In this document: one piece after another, positions 11,262 through 63,323 of the stretch
Layout of the letters: every line of letters starts with the position of its first letter
Numbering within the stretch: the first letter of the stretch is position 1
IMG/VR virus record: IMGVR_UViG_3300032315_001715
Location: 248,001 to 312,000 of that record
Direction: 5' to 3' (one strand)
DNA: 64,000 bases
Program-made: the position numbers and the translations under genes
The notes under the pieces: generated by a model
Told to the model about the DNA's origin: nothing
What the model saw: the letters and a program-made list of their open reading frames with translations, nothing else
The model's database searches: none

Positions 11262-11266
11262 CGATA

Positions 11267-12841: not shown

Positions 12842-12845
12842 CAAC

Positions 12846-13609: not shown

Positions 13610-13623
13610 GTGATTCTCCTTGA

Positions 13624-14246: not shown

Positions 14247-14249
14247 GAT

Positions 14250-14621: not shown

Positions 14622-14628
14622 GGTATCC

Positions 14629-20861: not shown

Positions 20862-21052
20862 TTCTTCTCCAATGCTTCTCGAATGTTCTTCATGGCTAGA
20901 TCCAGCCGGCGACGTGGCTCGTATGTTTTGGCGTAGACGCTGTTCCAATAATAGCTTGAATCGCACGCGGCCAATTCACCTTCCGTGGCCGTTACGGCGG
21001 AGATGGCTAAATCGAGCTCGCGCATCAGTGCATTAACCTCAGCGTTGTCCAT
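20858..21052 (-). CDS. Hypothetical protein
   Basis: MDNAEV start; overlap-coupled to both neighbours. Confidence 0.5.
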   Translation of the reverse strand: MDNAEVNALMRELDLAISAVTATEGELAACDSSYYWNSVYAKTYEPRRRLDLAMKNIREALEKK

Positions 21053-29758: not shown

Positions 29759-29983
29759 TCAAGTGAAACTTCCACCGGTAACCTCCACGTCGTTGCGATC
29801 AGCCAATAGCTGATCTTGCAGGGATATTATACGTTCGTGTAGACCAACCGTGCTGGTCAACAGCAGCGCGATTGCTGTGCTGAGCTCTTCAGCTTCCAAC
29901 ATGGTTAATCGTATTTCCTTGCTGTTGTAATTCCTGGCCGTTTGATACTTTTTGATAAAGGTTTCCAATGGTGCCGTGCTCAT
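29759..29983 (-). CDS. Hypothetical protein
   Basis: 74 aa ORF with GAGGAGG RBS. Confidence 0.6.
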   Translation of the reverse strand: MSTAPLETFIKKYQTARNYNSKEIRLTMLEAEELSTAIALLLTSTVGLHERIISLQDQLLADRNDVEVTGGSFT

Positions 29984-30416
29984 GCATCCTCCTCAGATGT
30001 TGCCTAACTTGCATTAATATTTCACCGAGCATGTTTTCGCCCATGCCACGGCACACACCCCAATATGTGTCGCCCCAGATATTGCCTTCGACCAAGTTAG
30101 CATCGCCGGTATCTAACAATTTCTGTGCCAACCTTGGATGCGTGGAGAATTTCTTCCAAACCAATTCTGCCATGACACGGTCCCGCACATCCTCTGATAT
30201 CCAGCCGGATCTTAGCGTAACATGCTTGCCCAGCTTCTTGGCCATGCCCGGCGTTGTAGAACCACGAATGATCTCTCGCTCTTCAGGATCTAATGTTTTA
30301 GCTGCCTGGTAAGCATGCTCAACACTTGGATAAATCTGACCCTCGAAGCTAACAGCAGCCGGATGGAAATTGCTGAGGAAATGATAGATACCAGAAAATT
30401 CCTTGATCTCAGACAT
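29889..30416 (-). CDS. NADAR (YbiA-like) hydrolase
   Basis: FLSNF, YPSVEHAYQAAK, AKKLG, KF..HP.L...LL.TG...LVEGN.WGD.YWG..GEN.LG.ILM.VR. Confidence 0.9.
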   Translation of the reverse strand: MSEIKEFSGIYHFLSNFHPAAVSFEGQIYPSVEHAYQAAKTLDPEEREIIRGSTTPGMAKKLGKHVTLRSGWISEDVRDRVMAELVWKKFSTHPRLAQKLLDTGDANLVEGNIWGDTYWGVCRGMGENMLGEILMQVRQHLRRMHEHGTIGNLYQKVSNGQELQQQGNTINHVGS

Positions 30417-33260: not shown

Positions 33261-34088
33261 TTAAGGAAGTGATGCATAGATGTGCTGTTGCAACTGCAAA
33301 GTGAACCCATGTCTCATGGCCAGCAGTGCTGCATATTCATGATTGCCCTGATTGCTACTTTGATCCAAGAGACCCGGTGTCCAGAATGAAATTCTTTCAT
33401 CAACCTCGCTGCGCATCTCCAAGCTGGCGTTGTTGCCCACCTTTTCCGGCGCACGGTTGTAGATGTTCATGGGACTCACGTAAACGCTGCGTGGACCCTT
33501 TTGCCGACGGAATTCATACGCAAACTCCGGAACATCGTGATGATTGCTAGCAGCGTCTGAGCTCACCACGAACTTCAGCACGTTTGCCCGTGCAAACACG
33601 TCGGGTCGGATGTCACCATAGCGATTGGTGGTTTCGTTGGCCTTTGGACTCACCACCAGGGTGGTTTCTGCGGGCAACGGACGAAGGAAGTCGCCATTGC
33701 TTTCGATCTGTGTGCGGAAACCCTGTGCGTGCAGGAATTCTAGGAAACTGGTTAGATTCTTTTGCAGCATGGGCTCTCCGCCGGAGACCACGATCAGCAA
33801 CCGATCCATGAAGCTTTCACGCACGATCCCGTTGCTTGCCACTTCCTTGTCCACCGCACCGTGGATCTTGGCCAGCACCTGGTCAAAGGTCAACACGTCG
33901 CCGCTATCGAACCAAGTGTCGCAGAACGTGCAAGCACGATTGCACTTGCTAAAACGAACAAACACCGCCGGCTCGCCGCTGAACGGCCCCTCGCCTTGCA
34001 GGGTTGCAAATACTGACGTTACCATCAGTTCATTCTCGGCCATGTTCTTGAAAAACGTGGGCGAGACTATTTCATTTTTACCAAACAT
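33261..34088 (-). CDS. queE: 7-carboxy-7-deazaguanine synthase (radical SAM)
   Basis: TLQGEGPFSG.PAVFVR..CNRACTFCDT (CxxxCxxC), SGGEPMLQ, IESNG, VVSPK, LQLQQH. Confidence 0.9.
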   Translation of the reverse strand: MFGKNEIVSPTFFKNMAENELMVTSVFATLQGEGPFSGEPAVFVRFSKCNRACTFCDTWFDSGDVLTFDQVLAKIHGAVDKEVASNGIVRESFMDRLLIVVSGGEPMLQKNLTSFLEFLHAQGFRTQIESNGDFLRPLPAETTLVVSPKANETTNRYGDIRPDVFARANVLKFVVSSDAASNHHDVPEFAYEFRRQKGPRSVYVSPMNIYNRAPEKVGNNASLEMRSEVDERISFWTPGLLDQSSNQGNHEYAALLAMRHGFTLQLQQHIYASLP

Positions 34089-34969: not shown

Positions 34970-35129
34970 TGACCTTGCGTGCAACCACCGCATCATCTCG
35001 TATTTCCCAGGTGATTTCATCACCTTCGGTCCATCCAAGATCATTTAGCATCGTCGGATCAAAAACAAGGATGATCTCACCATCTTCTTCGGCTACCTTT
35101 GCGGTATAGGTTTTTGGTTCAATGTTCAT
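34959..35129 (-). CDS. AbrB/MazE-like DNA-binding protein
   Basis: V.EEDGEIIL.F...MLNDLGW.EGD.I.WEI pattern. Confidence 0.55.
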   Translation of the reverse strand: MNIEPKTYTAKVAEEDGEIILVFDPTMLNDLGWTEGDEITWEIRDDAVVARKVNDH

Positions 35130-35629
35130 GAAAATAAATCCTCGTTCCATTCGCGATGTCCTTCGCGATACGCCATGTTTGACACGGTTTCTCGTACTTC
35201 AACGCGGAAGCACCAAAGTCGTGCAGCTTCGCCTGGACCCCATATTTCCGGTACATAAACACCATTGACATACTTATAAAGCATATCTGCCAGGCCTTCG
35301 CAGCCTAGACGAGGTAGAATCGTCAGCTTAGCCATCTTTTTTCTTTCCAGCATCTTGAACGTTTCAAGTTCCGGATCGTCGGCGGATACCAGTAGAGTAT
35401 GGTCAAATTGATCCTCAAGGATCTTCTTGAGTTCCTTGAGTCCGCCATAATCTGCTACCCAGTTTCTAACATCTAGATCATTGGTGCCAAAATAAAACTT
35501 CATCGAAAATGCATAACCGTGAATCATATTGCAATGACTGTCGGCACGCCATTGCCGATATGCACAGGGGAACGAATTGTGATATTCTTTAGTCGAAACG
35601 TATTTGTATGTGGTTGGTTCAGTTGTCAT
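35126..35629 (-). CDS. queD: 6-carboxy-5,6,7,8-tetrahydropterin synthase
   Basis: SHCNMIHGY (CxxxHG), WVADYG.LK..K..L..FDHT, GCEGLA, VEVRET. Confidence 0.85.
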   Translation of the reverse strand: MTTEPTTYKYVSTKEYHNSFPCAYRQWRADSHCNMIHGYAFSMKFYFGTNDLDVRNWVADYGGLKELKKILEDQFDHTLLVSADDPELETFKMLERKKMAKLTILPRLGCEGLADMLYKYVNGVYVPEIWGPGEAARLWCFRVEVRETVSNMAYREGHREWNEDLFS

Positions 35630-35786
35630 TGTTAAGATTTCCTTGCAGATATCCAAATGTAAACAGATCTTGCATCATACTATTGGATACGATAGAAGTC
35701 CATGACTGGTCTCCATTTTGCTGGAAAACGATATTGGCCTGCTTACCAGCATCATTGACAATTGGTATCTTAATTACTCGTGTCAT
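35619..35786 (-). CDS. Small hypothetical protein
   Basis: AGGAG RBS before MTRVIK. Confidence 0.45.
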   Translation of the reverse strand: MTRVIKIPIVNDAGKQANIVFQQNGDQSWTSIVSNSMMQDLFTFGYLQGNLNNDN

Positions 35787-36429: not shown

Positions 36430-37284
36430 TCATATTTTTCGTCCTTTTATTGTTCTTCCTCGAATATAACCAGTTGGAGTGGGTTCGTCTATTTTGCAAA
36501 GTAAATTCTTTCCAGTATCTTGATTTGTGAACCATACATGAGTTACCGGTCTACCTTTGATAAAATTAGGAGGCGGGTTTGACTTTTTAGGTATTTGCTT
36601 TTGTTCACCGGTAATCGGATTGTAAAACCATGAAGATGCACATCTATGTGGGTTTCCATGCTTCCAGCCATTTGGAATCATTTCACCGTCTTTAATCAAC
36701 CTACATTCATTAGTAAATGGATTATGCACCCACCTACGTCCCCTATTGAAATCATTGCTTAATCTTACATGCTTAGACGGATCATACTCTAAAGCATGTA
36801 TCATTTGGTGTAGTCCTAGATTTGAATCCAGCACGTGAATTCGACCTCTCAACGGAGATCCTTGGTACTTACGATTTTTATTATTCTGCGATCTTCCATA
36901 CCAAAATCCTGGTATTAACGGTTTATTACTTGCTATCATGGTATCTATAACACCATTTGTGATCCAAGAAAGTGATGGTGCATTTTCAAATACCGAATTA
37001 CATTGATTTAAAAATAACGGATTGATACGAGCATTGACCCGATTGAGAACTGAAATTTCGTATGATTTGGCATCGTCGGCAGTATTAAATATCCGTCTAA
37101 TTTTTGGTTCAAATGAATTGTGACCATATGCCTTTATCAAGGTTCGAACTAACTTTGACGATGTAAAATATCGAATCCATAGATCTTTTGAAATTGTTTC
37201 ATCGGTAAGATGTTTTGCGTATCTGCATCCAATATACCATTGTCCGGTAATCTTAAATCGAAGACTATAAACATACGCAACCAT
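36430..37284 (-). mobile_element. Free-standing GIY-YIG homing endonuclease with repeated C-terminal DNA-binding modules
   Basis: AYVYSL....GQWYIG.R, YFTSSK, E..VL, repeated W.TNG/WVHNP/WFYNP/WFTN..P.GW/F..GR units; TAAATA at 37307-37312 and GAGG RBS. Confidence 0.85.
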
Positions 37285-37335
37285 GAGAACCTCATACCTT
37301 TTAAGGTATTTAGTTCTCATGTCGCTTATCCAGTT

Positions 37336-38007
37336 TTATGGCATCTTAGACACTATGTTGAAAAATTCCTGCTTTAGGCTAGGATCTTCCCTAAACACGC
37401 CTCTCATGACAGATGTGGTCATCGCAGAATCGTGCTCCATAACACCGCGCATGGTCATGCACATGTGCTCAGCTTGTACCAATACTGCAATTCCTTCAGC
37501 TTCTGTTGCTTCCACTATTGCATCGGCAATCTGTACGGACATTTCTTCTTGGATCTGTGGCCGGGCTGAAATCCAATGTACCAAACGGTTAAACTTGCTG
37601 AGCCCGATCACGTTCTTTCCTGGAAAGACTCCGATGTAGCACTTGCCTCTGATACCCTGGAAATGGTGAGCACAGGTGCTGCGTATGCTGATCGGACCGG
37701 TAACATACACCTCATCATATTGATTGGCGTTAGGAAACGCGGTGATCTTTGGCTTTGGTAGGTAGCGGCCGGCAAATGTTTCTAGAACAAACATCTTTGC
37801 CACACGCCTTGCTGTGTCGTGGGTGTTGTGATCGTTGTCCGTGTCAATCACGAGGCTTTCGAGCACGCCCTGCATCTTTCCGGTAACCTCATCGATCAGG
37901 GCATCAAAATCAATGTCCCCAACCGCTTCGCTGATGTTGTCATTGCAGTAAAACCTGCTATCGCTTTCCTTGAGCCGATTACGGATCGTTTCGCTAGGTG
38001 TTGTCAT
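37336..38007 (-). CDS. folE: GTP cyclohydrolase I
   Basis: DTARRVAKM, STCAHHF, GLSKFNRLV..RPQIQE, AEHMCMTMRGV. Confidence 0.95.
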   Translation of the reverse strand: MTTPSETIRNRLKESDSRFYCNDNISEAVGDIDFDALIDEVTGKMQGVLESLVIDTDNDHNTHDTARRVAKMFVLETFAGRYLPKPKITAFPNANQYDEVYVTGPISIRSTCAHHFQGIRGKCYIGVFPGKNVIGLSKFNRLVHWISARPQIQEEMSVQIADAIVEATEAEGIAVLVQAEHMCMTMRGVMEHDSAMTTSVMRGVFREDPSLKQEFFNIVSKMP

Positions 38008-38067: not shown

Positions 38068-38535
38068 CTAGACGGTTCCGTTTGCACCAGGGACTCGCAT
38101 TGGCTTGCTGTTCGGATATGACGTACTAATGGATGTCATCGTTGCAATGCTTGCCCCGATTGCCCCGGTTGCCCCGGTTGCTCCGATGGTCAACGGTGTG
38201 TAACCACCTGAAGCGCCGCCACCCGTCCATGTGATGGTCGTTGGAGCTAGAGCAATGCTGGCCATTGTCATGGAGTCCGTAAGGGTATCTACCCATAAGC
38301 TCGATGATAGATCAGATACATCATTCTTTAGCTTGGCCTCCACGGGATCCATTCCGGTTTCGACCATCACCGTGATGATCTTTCGCATGCCGTCAAGTTC
38401 TTTCTGCACGGCATGTGCTTTGGCCGTTAGCTCATCCATGGAAGCACGCACGGTTTTCATTTGCCGTGAAATGTCATCCAAGTCCTGTCGTGTTTGCCGA
38501 TATTCTTTAAAGTAGTCTAAAATTGCGTCATTCAT
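38068..38535 (-). CDS. Hypothetical protein (coiled coil plus low-complexity GAT tail)
   Basis: GGAGG RBS; GATGATGAIGA repeat. Confidence 0.55.
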   Translation of the reverse strand: MNDAILDYFKEYRQTRQDLDDISRQMKTVRASMDELTAKAHAVQKELDGMRKIITVMVETGMDPVEAKLKNDVSDLSSSLWVDTLTDSMTMASIALAPTTITWTGGGASGGYTPLTIGATGATGAIGASIATMTSISTSYPNSKPMRVPGANGTV

Positions 38536-39062
38536 AGTGGCGTATCCTCCGAGTATTTTCTCCATGGTGTAAAGACTTTTCGATCCTGTAACGTATGGAG
38601 ATCGTGGCACCAAACACCGGGATTGGTAGCATTGAAATCTTTGTCGTCGATCTTCAATGTGGCATTATAGCCAAGCAATCCAATGTAGGGTATTTTTACC
38701 GAGATCTGTGGAATGAAATTGGTCTTTTCACTGTATCCACCTTCGCACACCCAATCGACGTGCTTGACATCAAAATCAAGGGTCACCATGCAACCAAGAT
38801 CAAGCACGTCGTTGATCATCTTGTCCCAGCTTGCACTTTCAAGACTGGTACCGTCATGCCAATTTCCTGGATTGAAACTTTGATTAGCACCGAGATAGAT
38901 ATGATCACATCCAGATGCTGTAACATGATCTTTGATCGAACCGATATCGTGGATACCGACAACGAATAGTGTTTTCATTGCATATGCCGGTGTATGTTCA
39001 ACCTCAATGCCGGTGAAAAATTCCACGTCATTTCTAATACCAGTATCATATTCACGCTTCAT
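38532..39062 (-). CDS. Conserved hypothetical protein coupled to dpdA
   Basis: FFTGIEVEHTPA..MKTLFVVG, HIY.GAN.SF, LKIDD.DF.ATNPGVWCH; start overlaps the dpdA stop region. Confidence 0.75.
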   Translation of the reverse strand: MKREYDTGIRNDVEFFTGIEVEHTPAYAMKTLFVVGIHDIGSIKDHVTASGCDHIYLGANQSFNPGNWHDGTSLESASWDKMINDVLDLGCMVTLDFDVKHVDWVCEGGYSEKTNFIPQISVKIPYIGLLGYNATLKIDDKDFNATNPGVWCHDLHTLQDRKVFTPWRKYSEDTPL

Positions 39063-40692
39063 CAAAATCCTCCATTTCCATGCTGACGTTGTTATCGGCA
39101 TCCATCCCGGTAATATTACGCAGAAGCTTCTCATGCTTGTTGATGAGATCCATTGGACGCTCCGATGTTAGTATTTCTGGACACAAATCCTTAAACTCAA
39201 GAAGATCGGGAGTAACATGGTTATTCGCTTCTAACAGCGGTTGGTCTTGCCATCGGCAAGCATCCTGTATGGCCCGTATATGCAGCTCAACATTATGATG
39301 CATTGCGATCAAATACGAGAATCCATCCATCGAGCTGGGCCATTTAACCTGGTACTTTTCGTATTCCTTATCAAACGATCCTCCAAAATCAAATAGACCC
39401 CCGTTACCTCGATCGTGTGCGAGGTACTCCTTGTATGCGTCCGTCCATCGAAACTTGTCACCGCATCGACCTTCCGGAGTGGAGGGATACCAATCACTTT
39501 CAATTTCCTTCTTGGAGAATGGTATTTTCTTGTAATCCAAATCGTCGTATCCTCGAACACAGATATCGCCAACCGTGCAACGGCGGCCTATTTCCGTGGG
39601 CATGATCACACCCTTGCGATCATTTGCAATGACCCAATCATTGATCAGCATTTGGCTGTTCTTTAGGGACTTGTCATCCACGATTGAACCGCCCTTGAAA
39701 CGCATGTTGCGATGGCTGTTTTCATATCCATAATACATCTGACCCTTGGCTGTCATCACGAACGGCGATGCTGCATCAAAGCTCAGGGTGATGTTTGGAT
39801 TAATGAACTGCCTGATGTTTCTTTGCAGCGTGGTTAGTGCGCAACCGGCCTTGATCTTGCCATTACCTAGATAATGCAGCCAATCCCTGCCATCAAGATA
39901 TTTGCCGTCTCGCATGATGATCAACCTACGCAGATTGATGGCAAAGTTCGAAGCTTGCACGTTGGAGAATGCCCAGGTTTCAAACGGAAGGTCCTTGACC
40001 GCATCCCACCAAATGTCGCCTTCGGCTTCGTTTCTTCCCTGCAACACGTTGAGGAATTTGGTAGCACCTTCCTTGCGATGCTTGATGAAAAAATCGTAGT
40101 TTTCAAGCGACACGTTCAAACAGTCCCTGAAGGTCTTCATACCAGGATGCAGGCTTTCCCCGGTTACCGGATCGAATCCAAACTTAACCAGACCGTATGT
40201 AGGGACATCGAGCACCATGGAATAATCCGCGGTGTGTTCGAGCCACCGAAGGATTTTCATGCGCATCTTATCCTTGTCCTGCTCCCAGTCCTGATCTGTT
40301 TGCTTGCCTTTTTTGGTCCACGGCCATTTCAACACACCCGTGGCAATTTGGAATCCGCCCGAGTCTCCTAATATAACCGTGTTGGATCTATCCCTCTTTT
40401 GCACCATGCTTTCATAAATGTCACTGTCTGCTGGATCAAGATACGCATGACCAGCTGAGTAAAGTGCCGCCGGATAATACATCAGGCTGTTCTTTTGGTT
40501 TAAAAAGTCCAAATCAATGCGATCGTTATTAAGTCCGTCTGGTAACCGGTCTCGAACGGTGTATTCAGGCATGCTGACGATCTTGGCATAGATCGCACTG
40601 ATGCTTGGAAGGAATACGGCATAGTCCTTTTGTGACTCGGCTAAGTTCAACGCTTGTGGATGCAAGTCTAGTTGTTTGGAAAATAAATTCAT
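39052..40692 (-). CDS. dpdA: DNA 7-deazaguanine transglycosylase (TGT-like, DpdA2 type)
   Basis: LGDSGGFQ, MVLDVP, NVLQG, WLHYLG, SFDAASP TGT-fold motifs within a folE/queD/queE neighbourhood. Confidence 0.85.
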   Translation of the reverse strand: MNLFSKQLDLHPQALNLAESQKDYAVFLPSISAIYAKIVSMPEYTVRDRLPDGLNNDRIDLDFLNQKNSLMYYPAALYSAGHAYLDPADSDIYESMVQKRDRSNTVILGDSGGFQIATGVLKWPWTKKGKQTDQDWEQDKDKMRMKILRWLEHTADYSMVLDVPTYGLVKFGFDPVTGESLHPGMKTFRDCLNVSLENYDFFIKHRKEGATKFLNVLQGRNEAEGDIWWDAVKDLPFETWAFSNVQASNFAINLRRLIIMRDGKYLDGRDWLHYLGNGKIKAGCALTTLQRNIRQFINPNITLSFDAASPFVMTAKGQMYYGYENSHRNMRFKGGSIVDDKSLKNSQMLINDWVIANDRKGVIMPTEIGRRCTVGDICVRGYDDLDYKKIPFSKKEIESDWYPSTPEGRCGDKFRWTDAYKEYLAHDRGNGGLFDFGGSFDKEYEKYQVKWPSSMDGFSYLIAMHHNVELHIRAIQDACRWQDQPLLEANNHVTPDLLEFKDLCPEILTSERPMDLINKHEKLLRNITGMDADNNVSMEMEDFDEA

Positions 40693-40742
40693 GTTTTTCT
40701 ACCTTGTACCTAGTATGATCATCTAGGTGGTCTGAGTCAATT

Positions 40743-41864
40743 TTAAGATAACAAGGCGTTCATCAACGGAGTTGCCCTGATGTATCTATCCAGCATTGCT
40801 AGCTGGCTTAACATGCTAGTTCTGATGAAATTGCTATCAGAATGCTCCATGAGGCTGCGTATCTTTCCCATGAGTTTTTCTCGATTCTGCTCGTAGCTGG
40901 CAAAATCCTTGGTCCATTCTTCTGGATATTTTAACCCGGCATCATACATCTCGGTATAGCTCAGTCGATTTGGTACCAACGGTATTGCGCCGCATATCAA
41001 ACCTTCTATCATGCTGATGCCATACGTTTCCTGCAGATTGGCAGAAAATACCATCTTGCTTTGCCCGAGCATGGTATGATATTCGTGCTTGGATAGCTCG
41101 CGTTCCTGGCATACCACCCATTCATACTCTGGCATGTGGTTAGCAAGATCCTTAAAGATATCAAGTTGCTTCTCTGGAGCAAGACGATGTGGAAACGCGA
41201 TTTGATTCTTCTTTTCCATGGCCGTGTATGGCTCTAGAACGCTCTTTAGATAATCCATCGGCCAGCCGGTGATATCGACCTTGCGATTTACGATCCAATT
41301 GGCCTTAACCTCATCGAACGTCGGAGCAAATGCTTCATTGTAGAATGGTCCCCATAGATTTTCTATGAACATGTCTAAATGAAAATTGGTTGCAAACCAA
41401 TTGGTATCATACGCTGCCATCATGGCTTTTTCGGAATGTCGAACCCAGGGTGCGTTACCGATCAGTCTACCTAGGAAATCCTGTGGATCATAACTACCAG
41501 CATGCCACATACCATGGATTTCAACCGGTATGTTCAATAGTTCGCTCATGTATCGAACCGAAATTACCGATGGATTCCACGCATCGGTAAAGAGGAATCG
41601 ATCACCTGGTTTAACGCGACCATGCTGGAATTCAGCAGCTATAGCACCTAGCTGAGAGCTCTTGTAGATGTTTGTTGCACCAAAATCAAGAAATGCACCG
41701 GGCGTTGGAACCGGTGGTACTTGCTCACCGTCAACGACGATGATATCAATTTTCTTTCCCATGACCGCGGCCTGTTTCTCGAGGGAAACAGGGATATGTT
41801 CATACCATTGCCTGGTATATCTGGTGTCAATCGGTTCAATTGGTACGATATATATTCGTGTCAT
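40743..41864 (-). CDS. GT-B fold glycosyltransferase
   Basis: WHAGSYD, FPHRLAPEKQ, SANLQETYGISMIEG..GAIPLVP..SY.E (GT4-like ExFG/E motif). Confidence 0.8.
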   Translation of the reverse strand: MTRIYIVPIEPIDTRYTRQWYEHIPVSLEKQAAVMGKKIDIIVVDGEQVPPVPTPGAFLDFGATNIYKSSQLGAIAAEFQHGRVKPGDRFLFTDAWNPSVISVRYMSELLNIPVEIHGMWHAGSYDPQDFLGRLIGNAPWVRHSEKAMMAAYDTNWFATNFHLDMFIENLWGPFYNEAFAPTFDEVKANWIVNRKVDITGWPMDYLKSVLEPYTAMEKKNQIAFPHRLAPEKQLDIFKDLANHMPEYEWVVCQERELSKHEYHTMLGQSKMVFSANLQETYGISMIEGLICGAIPLVPNRLSYTEMYDAGLKYPEEWTKDFASYEQNREKLMGKIRSLMEHSDSNFIRTSMLSQLAMLDRYIRATPLMNALLS

Positions 41865-41929
41865 TTCTTATGATACCTTTCCTACGGGCTGACTGTCAAT
41901 GTAAATACACAACGATAGGGAGATAGGCT

Positions 41930-42670
41930 ATGCCTGAATTGATTCAACCACATAATCATGTTTGTAACTGGTGTCACAGACCGGCTAATTTTTTGAGCGT
42001 TAACGCTAAGAAATATCGATGTGTTAGCAGTATAACCAAATGTCCTGGCATTTCTGCTAAGGCTGAAGCAACTCGGAAATCAAGAATGTCAATCGATGAC
42101 AGACGAGATCATATGAAGAGAATGAATCAAAAAGCTAACGAAACTATTAAGAACCTCAGTGAAGATCCACAATGGAAAGAACGTAGATCATCAAAAATTT
42201 CAGAAGCGGTTAAGCTACGCGGCGGTCACATTGGTAAAAATAATCCAATGTATGGAAAGAAACATTCATCTGGAACCATTGATAAGTTAAAGGCCGCGGC
42301 ATCATCTAGAGATCATATCGCATATGAAAAAGCCACTAACACAAAGATATCAAACGGCAACGCAATTTCAAAGGATCTAAAATCAGCATATGAGCTCTAC
42401 GAAGAAGAGGTTGACCAAATTACTAGAAATTCTTGGATCAAACATCAATCATTAATCAATCCAAATGGATATACTAGAGGTAGCGATTATGAACTAGATC
42501 ACAAATATAGTAAGCATAATGGATTTATACATGGAGTTGATCCAACGGTGATAGGACATCATGCTAACCTAGCTTTGATTGCAAAATCATCTAATCGATC
42601 AAAAAGGATAAGATGTTCTATCACCTTAGATGAACTTCACTCTCTTATCGAGAGTGCTCCCACTTCATGA
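41930..42670 (+). mobile_element. Free-standing HNH-type homing endonuclease with NUMOD3, antisense in the dpd cluster
   Basis: N-terminal CxxC..C..C, GKNNPMYGKKHS (NUMOD3), YELDHKYS..G..NL..N.SK; AT-rich; TAAATA at 41902-41907. Confidence 0.75.
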
Positions 42671-43037
42671 GTGCTCCGTTTTCGTCGTCTTCAGACACAT
42701 CGATCCATACGTCTCTATTTGGCCACTTAGCCGATATCTTTTCATATAGATCTTCAGCTATCATTTCGCAGCTACGATAGTCTAGTTGCAATACCTTATC
42801 AGAATACAATTTCTCGAGGTATCGTTTTGCCTGAATAAATTCCACATCTCGATCATTATGCTCGACACTGATCCATACCTTGAAATGAAACATATGACGA
42901 TGGGGATAACCAAGATAGCTGACATCATATTCGTCGCCAGTTGCCAACGCAGGATCGGTCAATGCCACTGGATACTTGTGGATGCCTTCCTTGCTAAATT
43001 TCACATACACCATACGGCTGGTAGGTTCAATAGACAT
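42645..43037 (-). CDS. dpdL: QueD-paralogous T-fold protein, DpdL-like (putative CDG decarboxylase)
   Basis: YLGYPHRHMFHF (LxxxHRHxF), DVEFIQ, SCEMIAEDL, VSEDDENG. Confidence 0.65.
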   Translation of the reverse strand: MSIEPTSRMVYVKFSKEGIHKYPVALTDPALATGDEYDVSYLGYPHRHMFHFKVWISVEHNDRDVEFIQAKRYLEKLYSDKVLQLDYRSCEMIAEDLYEKISAKWPNRDVWIDVSEDDENGALMKWEHSR

Positions 43038-43095: not shown

Positions 43096-44103
43096 TTACT
43101 TGTTGGCACGCACCGAAACTAGATTTTTTTCAAAGATATCAGTGCAGGCTTTCCATGTGAAACGCCTGCTGCTTTCCTCCACCATCTTTCGATCAAGATT
43201 TAAGCACACGTTTATGGCTTCGGAAAGATCGTCAGCTATACACCCGTCCACTCCGGGTGTGATGATATCGATCGGACCTGTTACCGGATATGCTGCTACC
43301 GGGGTGCCACATGCCATGCTTTCAAGCATCACCACGCCGAATGTGTCGGATCGGCTGGGAAATACAAACACGTCTGCATTGGCATAATATCGCGCTAGGC
43401 TGGCCCCTTTTTTATAACCAGCGAATATAACATCGGGATATTTAGATTTAAGAGTTTCAAGATACGGACCATCACCTACTAGTATCTTTGTTCCCGGTGT
43501 TTTGATCGAGCAAAAGTCATCAAGTCCTTTTTCGGGACTAGCGCGGCTAACACAAAGTAGAACCGGTTTTCCAGCAAGATTTGTTTTGCGCTGATCCGTG
43601 TTAAAAGTGTTATGATCGACGCCTCGGCTCCATATCACAAGATTGTTGAATCCTTTGCTGCGTAGCTCTTGTTCCATGGTAGCAGTTGTTACTAAAACTC
43701 GATGACTGAACTTGTGGAAGACTCGCATGAAAAAATAGCCCACCCTGACTGGTATTCCGTGGTGTATCTTGAGATATTCGGGAAACTTGGTGTGATAGCT
43801 GGTATTGTGCGGTATCTTCCTGTGCCTGACCTTGCAATACCACCTTGCGGCGATACCTAGTGGCCCTTCAGTGGCTATGTGTATGAAGTCAGGATTAAAA
43901 TTCTCTATCAATCTGCCAATTTTCCAAATATCCCATGATAATCTAACCTCAGGATATCCTGGCATCGGAATGGTACGGAAAAGTCCCGGTTCTATGACCT
44001 GTACCTCATATCCGCGTTGTTGCATTTCTAATACAGTGGCCCGCAAGGTAGTGACCACCCCGTTTACGTTATCCCAGGTGTCTGTTACCACTGTTAGTTT
44101 CAT
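43096..44103 (-). CDS. GT4 glycosyltransferase, Agt-like (glycosyl-diacylglycerol synthase)
   Basis: VTDTW.NVNGVVTTL, HIATEGPLG..AR, TSYHTKFPEY, WSRGVD, EKGLDDF, FVFPSRSDTFGVVMLESMACGTPVAAYPVTGP. Confidence 0.8.
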   Translation of the reverse strand: MKLTVVTDTWDNVNGVVTTLRATVLEMQQRGYEVQVIEPGLFRTIPMPGYPEVRLSWDIWKIGRLIENFNPDFIHIATEGPLGIAARWYCKVRHRKIPHNTSYHTKFPEYLKIHHGIPVRVGYFFMRVFHKFSHRVLVTTATMEQELRSKGFNNLVIWSRGVDHNTFNTDQRKTNLAGKPVLLCVSRASPEKGLDDFCSIKTPGTKILVGDGPYLETLKSKYPDVIFAGYKKGASLARYYANADVFVFPSRSDTFGVVMLESMACGTPVAAYPVTGPIDIITPGVDGCIADDLSEAINVCLNLDRKMVEESSRRFTWKACTDIFEKNLVSVRANK

Positions 44104-44876
44104 TTGTATGTTTCATAGATCTTCATTGATCCGTCCTCTTCCAACAATAATAGCTGAAATTCGCCATCATGCGTTTCGACAAGAACCGAGCATGTTTCTA
44201 CCCAATCGCCGTCGTTGGCATAAATCACGCCATTTATTGCTTTTATGGCAGGAGTATGTATGTGTCCGCATATGACACCGTGGAATCCATTGCTCTTGGC
44301 ATGTGCAGCCAAATGTTCTTCAAATTTGTAAATGAAATTAAGTGCTTGCTTGGTTCTACCTTTGACATATTTGCTGAGGCTCCAATAACCAAGACCAACT
44401 AGTTTTCTCATACGATGTATTAGACCGTTGCACATCAACAGGGCAGTATATGCACGATCACCTAGAATGCTCACCCATTTCCAATGCCGTGTTACCTGAT
44501 CGAATAGATCACCGTGTGTGACAAGCCATTTTCTACCATGTAAATCAACATGTGTGATTTGATTTGATATGGTGATATTTCCGGTCTTAAGACCATGCTT
44601 CAACCACGGACGAAGGAACTCGTCATGGTTTCCGATGATGTAGTGGATCTTTGTGCCTCTCTTGGCTTTGGTTAGAAGCCGGCGAACAACATTGCTGTGT
44701 TCTTGCGGCCAATGCCACCCCCTTGAGAGCTTCCACCCGTCGACGATATCCCCAACAAGATATAATGTATCCGAATTGTTGTTCTTGAGGAAGTTGCAAA
44801 GCTGGTCGGCTTTGCAACCTTTCGTACCAAGATGTATGTCTGATATCCAGATTGATCTATATTGCATTTTTCCCAT
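44100..44876 (-). CDS. plcP: PlcP-type metallophosphoesterase (phospholipase C; LpxH-like family)
   Basis: ISDIHLG, LYLVGDIVDGW, WPQ.H..VVR.LL.KA..GT, GNHDEFLR, HGDLFD, LGD.AY, YWSLS, GVICGHIH, NDGDWVETC. Confidence 0.8.
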   Translation of the reverse strand: MGKMQYRSIWISDIHLGTKGCKADQLCNFLKNNNSDTLYLVGDIVDGWKLSRGWHWPQEHSNVVRRLLTKAKRGTKIHYIIGNHDEFLRPWLKHGLKTGNITISNQITHVDLHGRKWLVTHGDLFDQVTRHWKWVSILGDRAYTALLMCNGLIHRMRKLVGLGYWSLSKYVKGRTKQALNFIYKFEEHLAAHAKSNGFHGVICGHIHTPAIKAINGVIYANDGDWVETCSVLVETHDGEFQLLLLEEDGSMKIYETYK

Positions 44877-46227: not shown

Positions 46228-47241
46228 TTAAAAACTGAATAGATCACCAAAACTGTTGGCTTCTTTGTTTGAATCTAAATCCCAGCGCAGCACGCCGAGG
46301 AGGTTTTTTACCTTCTTGTCTATCAATGCGGCTTCCATGGCCTCATCATCAAATGGTAACTGCTTGAACCATTCTGGCAAGGTAAGCTCATCGACCGGAT
46401 ATGCCACCGAAGTTAACCCGCTGGGATTTGGCCGAAGCTTGCAAACGATAACCTTAAATCCATCTTGGATTGGCATGGAGTAATGATCATTATGGATTTT
46501 TTTGAGCCTGTTCCAATTAATGGATGCAAGAACATGCCCGGGTATCATGGATTTCTTGCCTGGGTCTCCGCCCTTCCAATCAACCTTTCCCTGTAAGTCC
46601 ATCACGTTTTGATAATGGGTTATCTTGTTAGCACGTTTCGGTGAACCTTTCAACCATCCAGGCCAGCTACGGAATTCCTTACGGAATGCCAGTATCTTCT
46701 CATGAATGTCACCTTCTGTCGATCCGGTCAATACTGCCGTTAATATATCACTGAGAAAGTCTTGCACGATCTTAGGAGTATCACTGCGCTTGAGATCCAA
46801 TCCCATGGCCTTGATCTCGCCAGGCTTGCCGTTGAGATCCTTGCGCTTGCCTTCCTTGTCATAAATCAGCACCGCATAACGCTTCTTGGTGATGAATAAT
46901 CCCTTGTATGCACACAATTCTCGAGCAGCACGGATGATGGCACCGTTTTCTTCTGGACAATTGAATGCTTGGTTCATAAACTCAGGAAAGCTGTCGTTGG
47001 TCATGTCGCCGATGTTATCATACAGCTTGCTGACATTTTCCTTGGTCCACTCAAAGTCCTTGAACTCTGGCTGATCCTTCATCACTGGATATGCGCTGAA
47101 ATACCCAGAATTATGGACTAGTAATCCGTTAGCAAAAAAATATGGATGATTCGTATCCATTCCTACATCATATACATATTCGTCTTCAAATTCTCCAAGA
47201 TCCTCAACAGATGATATCTCTGTTAGGTAATGTTCCACCAT
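46228..47241 (-). CDS. polB: Family B DNA polymerase, C-terminal part preceded by C-intein
   Basis: After HN: SGYFS, GLFITKKRYA, KAMGLDLKRSDTP; AAGAGG RBS inside the endonuclease 3' end. Confidence 0.9.
   Translation of the reverse strand: MVEHYLTEISSVEDLGEFEDEYVYDVGMDTNHPYFFANGLLVHNSGYFSAYPVMKDQPEFKDFEWTKENVSKLYDNIGDMTNDSFPEFMNQAFNCPEENGAIIRAARELCAYKGLFITKKRYAVLIYDKEGKRKDLNGKPGEIKAMGLDLKRSDTPKIVQDFLSDILTAVLTGSTEGDIHEKILAFRKEFRSWPGWLKGSPKRANKITHYQNVMDLQGKVDWKGGDPGKKSMIPGHVLASINWNRLKKIHNDHYSMPIQDGFKVIVCKLRPNPSGLTSVAYPVDELTLPEWFKQLPFDDEAMEAALIDKKVKNLLGVLRWDLDSNKEANSFGDLFSF
47110..47241 (-). mobile_element. C-intein (44 aa) of a naturally split intein
   Basis: MVEHYLTEISSVEDLGEFEDEYVYDVGMDTNHPYFFANGLLVHN|S: block F VYD, block G FFANGLLVHN, Ser+1. 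Confidence 0.92.
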
Positions 47242-48266
47242 TTTACAACCTCTTTTATTACAGTGTTTGCATCTTTTATAAAGTCAGTTTCCCAGATTAT
47301 TTTTAACGAAAACCCCCTGGTAGTCGCAGCTTTTATCTTAGCATAATCATATGCCCAAATATTGTTAGCTGTCATTTTGAGATGAGGATGATAAAATGAA
47401 GATTCATACATCAATGGGTTACAATGCCAATAATCGCCATTGAATTCGATAATTTTCATACGTTGGCTATCTGTTATATCATAAAAACATGGAGATTGTA
47501 ATACATCGCTCCATATACAAAACTGATTGGTCTTTACTGTATATTGAAGTGATGCACCGAGACTACTTTCTACATATTCAATAAATGCGAGTTCGGCTTT
47601 AGAAGTATATCCTCTATTGTTTCTTTTGGATAAAATCTCTAAAGCTGTTGGTTTATCTACTGAATATTTTGACATTATCCAATCTATGTTAGAAGATTTA
47701 CCTTTTTCTCGATTGTAGTCGATCCATTTTTGGTATCCATCTAGTCCATATTTCTTTTCAAAATAATCTAAACTATTAGTGTATCGTTGTTTCTCAACAT
47801 AATTTTCCCATATTTGCAAGCCAACCTGCTCTCCATGACGAGCTATACATTTTTCCTCAGTTACGGCACGAGACCGGTTGAATTCGTTAAATTCCTCAAC
47901 AGACCAACCGTATTTTTCTTTCTTGGTTTCATAAAGATTTTTGACTCTTTGTTTTTCTCGATAAGATTCCCATTTCTGTAGGCCAATTTCGTTGCCATAT
48001 CTAGCTAGATATGTTTCTTTTGTCCGTCTGGTACTGTTTTGTCGTAGAAACTCAAATCTCTTAACAAGGTCAGTTAAGTCGTATGATACGAGATGACAAA
48101 ATGTATTATAGTAGCCGTTAATCAACGACACTCCGTTTGATATCATATGATCATACAACAGATGTATTTTTTCTACCTCACATTGAGAATATGATCGTTG
48201 ATTTGTAGCCGCTCTAAACCTAGCCGAGTTTATTACATCGTTGATGTTATCAATTTTCTTTGGCAT
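47223..48266 (-). mobile_element. Free-standing Vsr-like (PD-(D/E)xK) homing endonuclease between the polB halves
   Basis: Repeated YG...G...W..Y.EKQR units; SKAE..F; FYDI....KIIEFNGDYWHCNP; D..K...A..RGF.LKIIWE; TAAATA at 48289-48294. Confidence 0.85.
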
Positions 48267-48319: not shown

Positions 48320-48667
48320 TCACAACGAAATTATTTTATCACCGACCGAAAGTTCCGTTGGCTTCTTGCTAACAAGCCGACCATCGTCGGTGACTACCAT
48401 GATCGAATGGTCAGCAGTGACGATCACGCTTTTGCCATCTGAGGTATTAACTCGATATTTCTTTTTAGATACCTTATGACGATATACGTAATTATACGTG
48501 GTCCAATCGGTGGTTTTCGAGGAATGATCATATCCAATTAATTTGATTTGGTCATTAACAGAATACTCTTTGTCTCCGTCATTCCAGAATAAACTACCAT
48601 TCAGAAACAGATCTTCGATGGTTCTTTTTCCGACTGAGGTTTCGATGATTGACGCAGAATCAACCGA
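48320..48667 (-). mobile_element. N-intein (115 aa) of a naturally split intein
   Basis: YGDTD|SVDSASII (block A, Ser1), VTADHSIMV (block B TxxH), KPTELSVGDKIISL*. Confidence 0.92.
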
Positions 48668-50641: not shown

Positions 50642-51646
50642 TCAATGGTAATGGAGACCAGCTGCTATCGTTTCCTGATAGGTTCTGCTGCTGTACCATT
50701 TATATGAATCTAATATTATATCAGTATTGGTTCTTTTTGGTTTCCATCCAATTGAATCACCGATGGCAGAAATATCAGCAATGCTAATCGGAGGATCACC
50801 GGTGCGCCAATCACCATAAAAGTATGGTAGATTTTTTCCCAGCAGTGATTCCGATAGATCGACCATTTCCTGCACGCTAGTGCCAGCGCCGCTACCGAGA
50901 TTCATTGCATAGGCACCTGGATTGGAATCTAACCAATCTATGGATTGCTCAACGGCTTCGGCAAGATCCATGACATGGAGATAATCTCGAATTGCTGTGC
51001 CATCCTTTGTGTTGAAATCATTTCCAAAGATCTCAAGTTTCTTACCAAATGCTGCACTTTCCATCATTTTTGGTACCAAAAACGGTGCGTTCTGTAGGTG
51101 ACCTAGATCGTACAGATTGTGAGAACCGGAAACATTAAAAGTTCTAAAACTTATGCTGCTAATTCCATGCGCAATGTAACAATCGCGCAGTAGATATTCG
51201 ATGCTGAGCTTTGATCGGCTGTTTGATTTCAACGGTAAGAGCTGACAATTTTCATTTTTAGGAGAATCTAAATTAGCATATACATCGGCGGTGCTGAAGA
51301 ATATGAATTTATTGATACCAAATTCTGCTGCGTATTTTAACAGCTCAACCGATTTGATAACGTTGTTTTCCCAGATCGATATTGGATCAAGCAGGGATTT
51401 TGTCGGGCCTAACTCCTCCGCACAGTGTATGATGGTATCCGGTCGATAGCTGCTTATGGCCTGTAATACCACATTGCTGGTTAGATCTTCGTCGGCAAAC
51501 AAATCACAGTATTTTGTAATATGCGGTAACACCGCTGCTTTTTTGTCGATCAGCATCACGCTGTGATCGGTGGTGCTTTTTAGATGGGCAGCAATGTGGC
51601 TACCAATATAGCCACACCCTCCGGTTATGAAGATCCATTTGGTCAT
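50642..51646 (-). CDS. galE: UDP-glucose 4-epimerase-like extended SDR (catalytic Tyr replaced)
   Basis: ITGGCGYIGSH, FRTFNV.G, IFGNDF.T.DGT.IRDYLHV.DLA, NLGSG.G.SV; YxxxK reads NSRSK. Confidence 0.8.
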   Translation of the reverse strand: MTKWIFITGGCGYIGSHIAAHLKSTTDHSVMLIDKKAAVLPHITKYCDLFADEDLTSNVVLQAISSYRPDTIIHCAEELGPTKSLLDPISIWENNVIKSVELLKYAAEFGINKFIFFSTADVYANLDSPKNENCQLLPLKSNSRSKLSIEYLLRDCYIAHGISSISFRTFNVSGSHNLYDLGHLQNAPFLVPKMMESAAFGKKLEIFGNDFNTKDGTAIRDYLHVMDLAEAVEQSIDWLDSNPGAYAMNLGSGAGTSVQEMVDLSESLLGKNLPYFYGDWRTGDPPISIADISAIGDSIGWKPKRTNTDIILDSYKWYSSRTYQETIAAGLHYH

Positions 51647-63322: not shown

Positions 63323-63323
63323 G

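Follow-up and report, generated by a model that had tools for sequence, protein, structure and literature searches.

A glycosyltransferase linked to the predicted long-type DpdA of a phage 7-deazaguanine gene cluster

Gene content of the region

The locus analysed here raises the question of why a gene cluster predicted to replace guanine by 7-deazaguanine in phage DNA should also carry a glycosyltransferase, and whether this enzyme belongs to the modification system. The window, a stretch of 64,000 nucleotides of the IMG/VR record IMGVR_UViG_3300032315_001715, was described preliminarily as carrying on the minus strand, if an antisense HNH insert is ignored, a dpdL-like gene, a GT-B glycosyltransferase gene, dpdA and a translationally coupled conserved ORF of 176 codons. 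This observation was confirmed: all four ORFs exist at the positions given in Table 1. Genes for FolE, QueD and QueE lie downstream; no QueC was found.

Table 1. Features of the deazaguanine region and its surroundings, with positions in the 64,000-nucleotide window.
Position	Strand	Size	Assignment	Main sequence evidence
50642..51646	-		GalE-like UDP-sugar 4-epimerase	NCBIfam galE, 243 bits (cut-off 262)
44100..44876			LpxH-like phosphoesterase, coupled to the second GT4	
43096..44103			Second GT4	Strong GT4 Pfam hits
42645..43037	-	130 aa	DpdL, QueD-like T-fold protein	LxxxHRHxF motif; phrog_17812
41930..42670	+		Free-standing NUMOD3/HNH-like homing endonuclease	Pfam NUMOD3, E 3.8e-5; phrog_5104; DH...N...HH...N pattern
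41870..41899	-		Promoter-like site just upstream of the glycosyltransferase start, downstream of the endonuclease insert	TTGACA, 18 nt, TATCAT; 11 of 12 consensus matches
40743..41864	-	373 aa	GT4-like (GT-B, retaining-type) glycosyltransferase	EX7E, R227 and K232
39052..40692	-	546 aa	Predicted long-type DpdA (TGT-superfamily base-exchange enzyme)	Predicted TGT fold; conserved motifs
38532..39062	-	176 aa	Conserved ORF, translationally coupled to dpdA	Orphan alpha/beta fold (predicted)
38068..38535	-	about 155 aa	Coiled-coil, Gly/Thr-rich ORF	Likely ATG (38535) overlaps the stop of the 176-aa ORF as ATGA
37336..38007	-		FolE (GTP cyclohydrolase I)	Pfam, E 7.6e-49
35126..35656	-		QueD (6-carboxytetrahydropterin synthase)	Pfam PTPS, E 5e-15; NCBIfam QueD
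33261..34088	-		QueE (7-carboxy-7-deazaguanine synthase)	Pfam Radical_SAM; NCBIfam QueE models, E 2.6e-22; 40% identical to the ACP17 QueE

The DpdL-like protein carries the published DpdL signature (PMC10516641) as L-G-Y-P-H-R-H-M-F and is 50% identical to the ACP17 protein, 57% to the PA5oct protein and 33% to that of phiST. In the literature DpdL is predicted to decarboxylate 7-carboxy-7-deazaguanine. In relatives with the same gene order (locus L011) DpdL abuts the glycosyltransferase, whereas in the window a gap of 780 nt between them holds the antisense endonuclease ORF. The promoter-like site is a consensus match only, and the number of such sites in the region was not above that of the shuffled control.

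The glycosyltransferase of the window alone gave only a sub-threshold hit to Pfam Glycos_transf_1 (E 1.3e-3). However, 7 of 17 family members hit that model (best E 8e-12), and hhalign matched the enzyme to the window's own GT4. The EX7E motif (E279 and E287) and the donor-binding residues R227 and K232 were conserved in at least 121 of 122 homologues, so that the enzyme looks catalytically competent.

Assignment of the DpdA required structure-level evidence, since no Pfam, PHROG, NCBIfam or PDB sequence hit was obtained. The AlphaFold2 model (pLDDT 81.7) had TGT and DpdA (7ui4) structures as its top seven PDB matches in Foldseek, the top five at E of about 1e-5 and with the maximal match probability. 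The motifs DSGGFQ, LQG, HxLG and SFDxxS aligned to the ACP17/X1/ZZ01 DpdA family (hhalign E 1.7e-5). Residues D110, S, G, G, Q115, D162, G219, H273, G276 and D306, which include the two catalytic Asp positions of base-exchange enzymes, were conserved in at least 92 of 94 homologues.

The ATG of the 176-aa ORF (39062) lies 11 nt inside the end of dpdA, with a GGAGG 8 nt upstream, and homologues start at the same Met. The family has 805 representatives; homologues occur in ACP17 and, unlinked, in PA5oct. Its AlphaFold2 model (pLDDT 85.8) showed no fold match in the PDB.

Linkage of the glycosyltransferase to the deazaguanine genes

In order to find out whether the glycosyltransferase co-occurs with dpdA and dpdL, a prediction of the preliminary description, 80 viral loci from IMG/VR were chosen by the glycosyltransferase only. 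Of these, 78 had DpdL, 67 the long DpdA, 71 the 176-aa ORF and 62 FolE within 10 kb. DpdL or DpdA was the immediate same-strand neighbour in 60 of 78. The approximately 155-aa ORF was found in only 6 of the 80 loci and is not a conserved member. A GalE-like gene, whose product might supply the sugar donor, was found within 10 kb in 13 of the 80 and directly after the glycosyltransferase in locus L008, a loose association only.

The glycosyltransferase was also embedded in the deazaguanine cluster of six cultured phage lineages with different gene orders: PA5oct (DpdA-GT-DpdL), ACP17 (ORF176-DpdA-GT-DpdL-QueE), Phosso (DpdL-GT), X1 (GT-DpdA-DpdL-QueE), BCSR5 and the cyanophage BUCT-ZZ01 (DpdA-DpdL-GT). 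The 176-aa ORF is not a universal member: it is absent from Phosso, X1, BCSR5, BUCT-ZZ01 and the prophages.

A third, independent sample was provided by 41 bacterial genome loci, 33 of which had the glycosyltransferase together with the long DpdA. In alphaproteobacterial prophages and islands the two genes sit side by side, often with a queuosine-precursor transporter. One locus is a Methylobacterium prophage with DpdA, a Vut_1-like transporter, DpdL and the glycosyltransferase, but no FolE, QueD or QueE; another is an integrase-flanked island with Vut_1, the glycosyltransferase and DpdA. Some bacterial loci have the glycosyltransferase and the long DpdA without DpdL.

In contrast, of 80 loci chosen by the short DpdA3, 74 had DpdL and none had the glycosyltransferase. 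All six cultured DpdL phages that lack the glycosyltransferase use DpdA3, and one of them, phiST, has plain 2'-deoxy-7-deazaguanosine (dDG). In the DpdL tree the proteins of the two system types interleave, and at least three switches between the types are needed, so the association has re-formed independently. This argues against the suggestion, made in the preliminary description, that the DpdL-like enzyme may act differently here. We therefore regard the long DpdA, not DpdL, as the invariant partner of the glycosyltransferase, although one long-DpdA phage with a preQ1-type pathway, Vibrio phage 2.275.O, lacks the glycosyltransferase.

The linkage is far beyond chance. In the phage collection, 17 of the 22 tblastn hits were DpdL-positive records, where about 0.01 would be expected by chance. 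The enzyme could be an unrelated moron, for example one modifying a host surface polysaccharide, which hitch-hikes in a conserved replication-module neighbourhood: most of the 80 viral loci share ancestry and synteny, and JGI annotators called some homologues cell-wall glycosyltransferases. We consider this very unlikely, since the adjacency persists through at least eight gene orders, two DpdA subfamilies, T4-like phages, jumbo phages, cyanophages, temperate prophages and bacterial islands, and no DpdA3 locus of the 80 has the gene.

A second GT4, which the preliminary description did not mention, lies immediately upstream of dpdL, and could be the DNA-modifying sugar transferase instead of or in addition to the 373-aa enzyme. 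Its pI is basic (9.05). However, it was absent from all 80 related loci, its best NCBIfam matches are membrane glycolipid synthases, its coupled partner resembles LpxH, and a basic pI fits membrane association. This reading is also very unlikely.

Comparison with known systems

One of the closest known systems is the DpdL/DpdA3 system of Cellulophaga phage phiST (Hutinet et al. 2023, PMC10516641). As in the window, FolE, QueD, QueE and DpdL with the LxxxHRHxF motif are present and QueC is absent. However, phiST uses a short DpdA3 (about 260 aa) and has neither the glycosyltransferase nor the 176-aa ORF, while the window has a 546-aa DpdA of another subfamily.

Wroclawvirus PA5oct and relatives carry homologues of the long DpdA (32%), the glycosyltransferase (42%), DpdL (57%), the 176-aa ORF (44%) and QueE, with the same synteny with a split PolB and the sliding clamp. 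The gene order differs, the 176-aa ORF lies unlinked about 27 kb away, and there is no nucleotide similarity. PA5oct DNA has been reported to resist restriction enzymes whose sites contain G and to be sensed as hypermodified, the chemistry of the modified G being unknown (PMC12191111); that study named QueE and QueD but not the DpdA, DpdL or glycosyltransferase genes.

Phage GT-A and GT-B enzymes, including the T4 alpha- and beta-glucosyltransferases, glycosylate 5hmC or 5-hydroxycytosine in DNA (bioRxiv 10.1101/2023.12.21.572611; PMC13326640). These are also NDP-sugar-dependent enzymes embedded in a DNA-modification gene cluster, but no Pfam AGT or BGT hit was obtained for the enzyme described here, which has GT4-type EX7E signatures. 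Their acceptors are hydroxylated pyrimidines, and no purine or deazapurine acceptor is known.

HuiG of the huimycin pathway, genetically coupled to FolE/QueD/QueE-type 7-deazapurine synthesis, glycosylates a free 7-deazapurine base with UDP-GlcNAc, the only known sugar transfer onto a 7-deazaguanine-type base. It belongs to an actinomycete secondary-metabolite cluster with no transglycosylase, and its product is a free glycoside. In animal tRNA, QTMAN (GTDC1), a GT4-type enzyme, and QTGAL make mannosyl- and galactosyl-queuosine, adding sugar to a 7-deazaguanine derivative already installed by a TGT enzyme. There the substrate is RNA and the acceptor is the cyclopentenediol hydroxyl of queuosine, which is absent here; no DUF3524-type N-terminal domain was detected in the phage enzyme.

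Retaining GT4 GlcNAc-transferases with EX7E are also paired with LmbE/PIG-L deacetylases (MshA/MshB, BshA/BshB, PIG-A/PIG-L), with inositol phosphate, malate or phosphatidylinositol as acceptors. A PIG-L/LmbE-type deacetylase sits beside the homologues in BCSR5 and X1 and beside the distant relative in PhiXhv-12, the latter next to GlmS, which gives a hint at the donor. No deacetylase was found in the window.

Proposed role of the glycosyltransferase

The analysis establishes the gene identities, the folds and motifs, the conservation of the catalytic residues and the genomic linkage, while the DpdL reaction, the DNA target of DpdA, the sugar donor, the acceptor and the order of steps are inferred. 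The interpretation put forward in the preliminary description, in which the glycosyltransferase and the 176-aa ORF add a sugar or other group to the inserted base, is therefore supported only in part: the glycosyltransferase belongs to the deazaguanine module, but glycosylation of the base remains inference, and nothing indicates that the 176-aa ORF transfers a group.

The module might instead make a huimycin-like nucleobase glycoside acting as an anti-host or signalling metabolite, with the TGT-like protein not acting on DNA. This would agree with the HuiG precedent, with bacterial islands carrying a Vut_1 transporter, the glycosyltransferase, the TGT-like gene and a 585-aa protein, which look like conflict systems, and with an Aravind-lab preprint noting non-nucleic-acid roles for TGT-like domains. 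We consider it unlikely: PA5oct DNA is resistant at G-containing sites and targeted by sensors of modified G, the long DpdA is the only TGT-like gene found in the two PA5oct regions examined and no other is named in the published study, the genes sit in the replication module next to PolB, the sliding clamp and RNase H, and DpdA conserves both catalytic Asp positions.

It is also possible, though doubtful, that the glycosyltransferase works with the long DpdA without decorating the base, for example by glycosylating DpdA or another protein, or by making or consuming a small glycoside that regulates or feeds the exchange reaction; the DNA would then contain plain dDG. The invariant pairing is with DpdA rather than with any particular base pathway, overlapping or coupled reading frames are seen in several loci, TGT-family enzymes are known also to modify proteins, and 7-deazaguanine lacks an obvious O-nucleophile. 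The glycosyltransferase family is acidic (median pI 5.6), unlike T4 beta-glucosyltransferase, but the long DpdA is equally acidic and this evidence is weak. Against this reading, DpdA1, DpdA2, DpdA3 and bacterial DpdA work without any glycosyltransferase (PMC10516641), as would the long DpdA of Vibrio phage 2.275.O, and no precedent is known.

The explanation we favour, although it is about as likely as not, is that the window carries a seven-gene 7-deazaguanine DNA-modification system. FolE, QueD and QueE would make 7-carboxy-7-deazaguanine from GTP, DpdL would convert it to 7-deazaguanine, as proposed for phiST, and the long TGT-fold DpdA would exchange genomic guanine for that base. The glycosyltransferase, in this view an obligate evolutionary partner of this DpdA type, would use an NDP-sugar, possibly UDP-HexNAc or UDP-hexose, to attach a sugar to the 7-deazaguanine, either after insertion into DNA or on the free base before insertion. 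7-Deazaguanine has no hydroxyl group, so a sugar would have to go on N2, O6, N1/N3 or a ring carbon, which is unusual for a retaining GT4 enzyme, and the loci without DpdL indicate that the acceptor cannot depend on DpdL's product specifically. The 176-aa ORF would be an accessory partner of DpdA. The preliminary description knew of no glycosylated 7-deazaguanine in DNA, and no paper describing one was found. In either order of steps, virion DNA would carry a glycosylated 7-deazaguanine rather than plain dDG, and the linkage described here points to such an undescribed sugar-decorated guanine analogue in phage DNA.

Gene content of the deazaguanine region

The sequenced window is phage DNA: it contains a family-B DNA polymerase split by an intein/endonuclease region, a sliding clamp, RNase H, RNA ligase and many homing endonucleases. 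A nucleotide search of the region against 50,697 phage records returned no match. Between 33.2 and 43.1 kb, the minus strand carries, in transcription order, the genes from dpdL to queE listed in the table, interrupted by an ORF on the plus strand. The ATG of the 176-aa ORF lies 11 nt inside the end of the gene for the 546-aa protein and follows a GGAGG, and the next ORF, which encodes a coiled-coil followed by a Gly/Thr/Ala-rich tail, starts by an ATGA overlap with the stop codon of the 176-aa ORF; it was found in only 6 of 80 related loci. The coordinates and gene order given in the preliminary description are therefore correct, and its observation held.

At least five free-standing homing-endonuclease-type ORFs (HNH, GIY-YIG, NUMOD3) were found within 40 kb, two of them inside the deazaguanine cluster: one between FolE and QueD, the other between DpdL and the glycosyltransferase. 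The family-B DNA polymerase is in three ORFs: the N-part ends in an intein N-splicing region, the C-part begins with an intein C-splicing region, and the 347-aa ORF between them has a weak match to a homing-endonuclease PHROG. The same layout is present in PA5oct, where it is annotated as a Hef-like homing endonuclease. A T4-type RNA ligase 1 also appears split, with a GIY-YIG ORF on the opposite strand lying between its two domains.

Features of the window and of related loci (L-numbers are our labels for the loci; their coordinates are those of the locus)
Sequence	Coordinates	Strand	Feature
Window	42645-43037	-	DpdL
Window	41930-42670	+	NUMOD3/HNH-like ORF, antisense
Window	40743-41864	-	Glycosyltransferase, GT4-like, 373 aa
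Window	39052-40692	-	Long DpdA, 546 aa
Window	38532-39062	-	Conserved ORF, 176 aa
Window	38068-38535	-	ORF of about 155 aa
Window	37336-38007	-	FolE
Window	36430-37320	-	GIY-YIG endonuclease
Window	35126-35656	-	QueD
Window	33261-34088	-	QueE
Window	43096-44876	-	Second, canonical GT4 (335 aa) and LpxH-like metallophosphoesterase
Window	48320-50566	-	Family-B DNA polymerase, N-part
Window	47223-48266	-	347-aa ORF, homing-endonuclease type
Window	46228-47241	-	Family-B DNA polymerase, C-part
Window	16788-17408	-	RNA ligase 1, N-terminal domain
Window	16193-16816	+	GIY-YIG ORF
Window	15559-16164	-	RNA ligase 1, C-terminal domain
Window	10650-11204		Homing-endonuclease-type ORF
Window	11438-12298	+	Sulfotransferase-like ORF
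Window	20391-20966		CreA
Window	29889-30416		NADAR protein
Window	59634-60662		UvdE
Window	62174-63941		Glutathionylspermidine-synthase-like gene (E 1e-136) and DUF1190 gene; GC-rich right end (GC 0.56 against about 0.46 elsewhere)
L089, Burkholderia phage BCSR5	7357-12560		Block with PP-loop ATPase, deacetylase, small protein, glycosyltransferase and DpdA
L007, Xanthomonas phage X1	2843-6927		Block of the same sub-type
L090, Synechococcus phage BUCT-ZZ01	2450-8524		Cyanophage cluster with phosphoribosyltransferase and second weak glycosyltransferase
L092, Xanthomonas phage PhiXhv-12	4771-8005		GlmS, LmbE-type deacetylase and distant relative of the glycosyltransferase
L093, Vibrio phage Bakedbeans	7212-8363		DpdL as C-terminal domain of a 383-aa protein
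L095, Chryseobacterium phage MA9V-3	7467-8348		DpdL as C-terminal domain of a 293-aa protein
L219, Pseudooctadecabacter jejudonensis	9509-15414		Integrase-flanked bacterial island
L220, Methylobacterium sp. NFXW15	7593-11071		Prophage cluster

Identification of DpdL, the long DpdA, the glycosyltransferase and the 176-aa ORF

The identification of DpdL is secure. The protein carries the published LxxxHRHxF signature in place of the CxxxHGH of QueD (Hutinet 2023), and is 50-63% identical to the DpdL proteins of ACP17, PA5oct and Phosso and 33% identical to that of phiST; tblastn and BLASTP searches hit the phiST protein (CGPG_00067) at 33-35%. Its activity as a CDG decarboxylase is inferred and is also unproven in the literature, where heterologous expression gave no dDG.

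The 546-aa protein could not be named by any sequence library: scans against Pfam (including the TGT model PF01702), NCBIfam and PHROG gave no hit, and neither did sequence and profile searches of the PDB. A profile search of 5.8 billion proteins with the alignment of this family returned 2,462 relatives, and none of the 120 listed has a Pfam domain. Three lines of evidence identify it as a member of the TGT superfamily. An AlphaFold2 model built on 20 homologues (pLDDT 81.7, pTM 0.81) had bacterial TGT, QTRT2 and the DNA preQ0 insertase DpdA (7ui4) as its seven best PDB matches, the top five with E about 1e-5 and probability 1.0, although the TM-scores were modest (0.31-0.47). A profile-profile comparison aligned it with the 416-437-aa DpdA of ACP17, X1 and BUCT-ZZ01 over 190 columns (E 1.7e-5), placing DSGGFQ, LQG, HxLG and SFDxxS in register; DSGGLQ and SYDS are the corresponding motifs of that family. 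Finally, these residues are invariant in at least 92 of 94 homologues, among them D110-S-G-G-x-Q115 and D306 (in S-F-D-x-x-S), whose aspartates are equivalent to the catalytic D102 and D280 of the Z. mobilis enzyme. The zinc-binding CxCxxC...H subdomain was not found, the family alignment having only one invariant Cys (C378). The protein is a TGT-superfamily enzyme of a long, zinc-site-less subfamily, a new, unnamed branch which we call long DpdA.

The glycosyltransferase itself scores 18.8 bits against the Pfam Glycos_transf_1 model, below the cut-off of 26.4, while 7 of 17 relatives hit this model (best E 8e-12); hhalign to the window's own GT4 gives E 3.6e-5, and PDB profile hits are weak (E 0.03-0.9). 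E279, G282 and E287 (the EX7E motif), together with R227 and K232, are conserved in at least 121 of 122 homologues; by analogy with GT4 enzymes, the Arg/Lys pair is assigned to binding of the donor diphosphate. The N-terminal half matches nothing known: no Pfam hit was obtained in residues 1-200 for any of 17 members, so that the GT4-type acceptor domain Glyco_transf_4 was not detected, and the domain has its own invariant set of residues (E10, R15, Y16, D94, H121, D129, E145). By sequence the enzyme is not a member of the T4 alpha/beta-glucosyltransferase families (no Pfam AGT or T4 BGT hit at E up to 0.01), nor of the QTMAN/GTDC1 family, since the DUF3524-type N-terminal domain was not among the Pfam hits of any family member. 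On sequence evidence it is a GT4-like enzyme with a novel acceptor domain.

The 176-aa ORF encodes a real, conserved protein, with 805 representative clusters and a confident model (pLDDT 85.8). The Pfam, PHROG, NCBIfam and PDB searches returned nothing for it, and Foldseek of the model against the PDB and BFVD returned only its own ACP17 homologue, the other matches being partial beta/alpha fragments at E above 0.01. Among the 150 best of the 805 representatives, 26 carry an extra domain of about 100-180 aa, which is not DpdL, the glycosyltransferase or DpdA and has no informative Pfam match. The ORF is coupled to DpdA in the window, in ACP17 and in most viral loci, is unlinked in PA5oct, and is absent from Phosso, X1, BCSR5, BUCT-ZZ01 and the prophages; hhalign comparisons showed that the small neighbours of the glycosyltransferase in X1, BCSR5, BUCT-ZZ01, Phosso, PA5oct and the Methylobacterium prophage are not remote homologues of it. 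Its invariant acidic and aromatic residues (E20, E22, D96, K137, D139, D140, W151, W167) suggest a ligand-binding or catalytic site, and we regard it as an accessory without assigned chemistry.

The glycosyltransferase is associated with the deazaguanine genes

The preliminary description had named lack of co-occurrence with dpdA as a result that would refute it. Three independent samples were examined, and in all of them the glycosyltransferase was found with the deazaguanine genes.

First, 80 IMG/VR loci fetched with the glycosyltransferase alone contained DpdL in 78, the long DpdA in 67, the 176-aa ORF in 71 and FolE in 62, most misses being at contig ends. The common order is DpdA, 176-aa ORF, DpdL, glycosyltransferase. 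The second GT4 of the window (pI 9.05, best matches membrane glycolipid synthases), which lies directly upstream of dpdL and overlaps by 4 nt with the LpxH-like metallophosphoesterase, was absent from all 80 loci, and the phosphoesterase was present only in the closest one (L021). These two genes may form a host-envelope moron or add a second sugar step.

Second, in the phage collection the glycosyltransferase hit 22 records, 17 of which are among the 28 records with DpdL, where chance would give about 0.01; a profile search added BUCT-ZZ01. The gene is embedded among deazaguanine genes in PA5oct-like phages, Phosso, ACP17, X1/BUDD, BCSR5 and BUCT-ZZ01, each with a different gene order and with two different long-DpdA subfamilies. 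The BUCT-ZZ01 cluster also holds a phosphoribosyltransferase next to QueE and a second weak glycosyltransferase (447 aa) upstream of DpdA; a phosphoribosyltransferase homologue is also present in PA5oct and in 10 of 80 viral loci, which hints at a nucleotide-level branch.

Third, in bacterial assemblies sampled at one genome per species, 41 loci carry a homologue and 33 of them have the long DpdA beside it. In the Methylobacterium prophage the block consists of DpdA, a Vut_1-like protein, DpdL and the glycosyltransferase, located between capsid and lysis genes, with no FolE, QueD or QueE. In Pseudooctadecabacter, the island has Vut_1, the glycosyltransferase, the long DpdA, a 585-aa unknown protein and a second glycosyltransferase, with a C5 DNA methylase nearby and no DpdL; it may be a Dpd-like self-modification or defence system. 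Vut_1/YhhQ is the queuosine-precursor transporter family, and a homologue is present in 18 of the 41 loci.

The glycosyltransferase tracks the long DpdA rather than DpdL

The idea that the glycosyltransferase tracks DpdL was rejected. All six cultured DpdL phages without the glycosyltransferase (phiST-like, MA9V-3, D479, Ahp1, RHph_I1_18 and Bakedbeans) carry the short DpdA3 type. Eighty further IMG/VR loci fetched with DpdA3 have DpdL in 74, and none has the glycosyltransferase, the 176-aa ORF or the long DpdA. In two of the DpdA3-type phages, Bakedbeans and MA9V-3, DpdL is the C-terminal domain of a longer protein, whose N-terminal part has no Pfam match.

In a DpdL tree the two system types are clustered but not separate, and at least three well-supported switches are needed. 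On this tree, the idea that the DpdL of glycosyltransferase-type clusters is a separate clade with a different reaction was rejected. DpdL is therefore an interchangeable supplier, and the glycosyltransferase moves with the long DpdA, in agreement with the bacterial loci that have the pair but no DpdL. The pairing is very frequent but not absolute: Vibrio phage 2.275.O has a long DpdA with QueF, QueC and Vut_1 and no glycosyltransferase.

Proposed role of the glycosyltransferase

The preliminary description proposed that the glycosyltransferase and the 176-aa ORF add a sugar or another group to the inserted base, or to a product of a DpdL-like enzyme acting differently from simple decarboxylation; this interpretation is only partly supported. 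What the analysis demonstrates is a complete GTP-to-CDG gene set plus DpdL, a TGT-fold enzyme with intact catalytic aspartates, a glycosyltransferase with intact donor-binding and catalytic signatures, and tight operon-like linkage of these genes. No QueC, QueF or pyrimidine hydroxymethylase was found among the 50 window ORFs scanned, the window being only part of the genome. The remaining steps are inferred, namely decarboxylation by DpdL, the exchange of guanine in DNA by the long DpdA, and the transfer of a sugar to DNA or to a base as acceptor. In this view, the long DpdA would install a 7-deazaguanine that is DpdL-derived or, in bacteria, imported, and the glycosyltransferase would add a sugar to it, either on DNA, as in T4, or on the free base, as HuiG does in huimycin synthesis.

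Published observations bear on this view. In phiST, which has DpdL and DpdA3 but no glycosyltransferase, all G is replaced by dDG. PA5oct DNA resists enzymes that cut at G-containing sites, which is only indirect evidence for guanine exchange by this DpdA type, and is attacked by nucleases that sense hypermodified DNA, its modification having remained unidentified.

A hint at the sugar donor comes from neighbouring genes. In a sub-type of the cluster, represented by BCSR5 and X1, a conserved block contains a PP-loop ATPase (QueC/PAPS-reductase-like), a PIG-L/LmbE-like deacetylase, a small protein, the glycosyltransferase and DpdA, which suggests a GlcNAc-then-deacetylate route, perhaps with an amide link to the CDG carboxylate. 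In PhiXhv-12, a jumbo phage with no DpdL, a distant relative of the glycosyltransferase (24% identity) sits after GlmS and an LmbE-type deacetylase; this may be a different amino-sugar modification. These arrangements recall the GT4 GlcNAc-transferase and deacetylase pairs MshA/MshB and BshA/BshB. The window itself has a GalE-like epimerase 9 kb away.

Several points weigh against glycosylation of the base. 7-Deazaguanine offers no hydroxyl group, so that the bond would have to be N- or C-glycosidic or at O6; the acceptor must be common to systems with and without DpdL; and TGT-like enzymes can modify proteins. The glycosyltransferase family is also acidic, but whole-protein pI proved uninformative as a proxy for DNA binding, because DpdA is equally acidic. 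We are highly confident that the glycosyltransferase is a functional part of the long-DpdA deazaguanine module, whereas the proposal that the DNA ends up with a glycosylated deazaguanine is about as likely as not.

Novelty and implications

The biosynthetic half of the system is the known DpdL pathway; the long DpdA is a new branch of a known superfamily, and the glycosyltransferase is a GT4-like enzyme with a novel acceptor domain. Literature searches, which did not extend to subscription-only papers, found no glycosylated deazaguanine in DNA. The only paper found to use the term DpdL, in two versions, does not mention a glycosyltransferase, the PA5oct paper names only QueE and QueD, and papers on phage DNA glycosyltransferases treat pyrimidines only.

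A more far-reaching reading, which we hold tentatively and consider slightly less likely than not, is that the virion DNA of this phage and of a very large environmental group carries the first known glycosylated purine analogue in DNA. The group has at least 7,900 glycosyltransferase homologues and 2,400 long-DpdA homologues, and includes PA5oct-like therapeutic jumbo phages, a cyanophage, alphaproteobacterial prophages and bacterial islands. The proposed modification is a hexosyl- or HexNAc-7-deazaguanine, which would be made by a dedicated two-enzyme unit, the long DpdA plus the GT4-like transferase, possibly through an N- or C-glycosidic bond.

Independently of the chemistry, these results give a practical rule for annotating phage genomes: DpdL systems come in two mutually exclusive forms, DpdA3 alone or a long DpdA with the glycosyltransferase. 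The same pair of long DpdA and glycosyltransferase also occurs in bacterial islands with a queuosine-precursor transporter.

All known DNA sugar modifications sit on hydroxylated pyrimidines, and all eight known 7-deazaguanine DNA modifications are small. A glycosylated deazaguanine would join the two fields and add a new class of bulky purine modification. It would also give a candidate explanation for the unidentified G modification of PA5oct-type phages, which are used in phage-therapy studies, for the recognition of these phages by sensors of hypermodified DNA, and for the failure of ACP17 dpdL plus dpdA alone to give dDG in E. coli.
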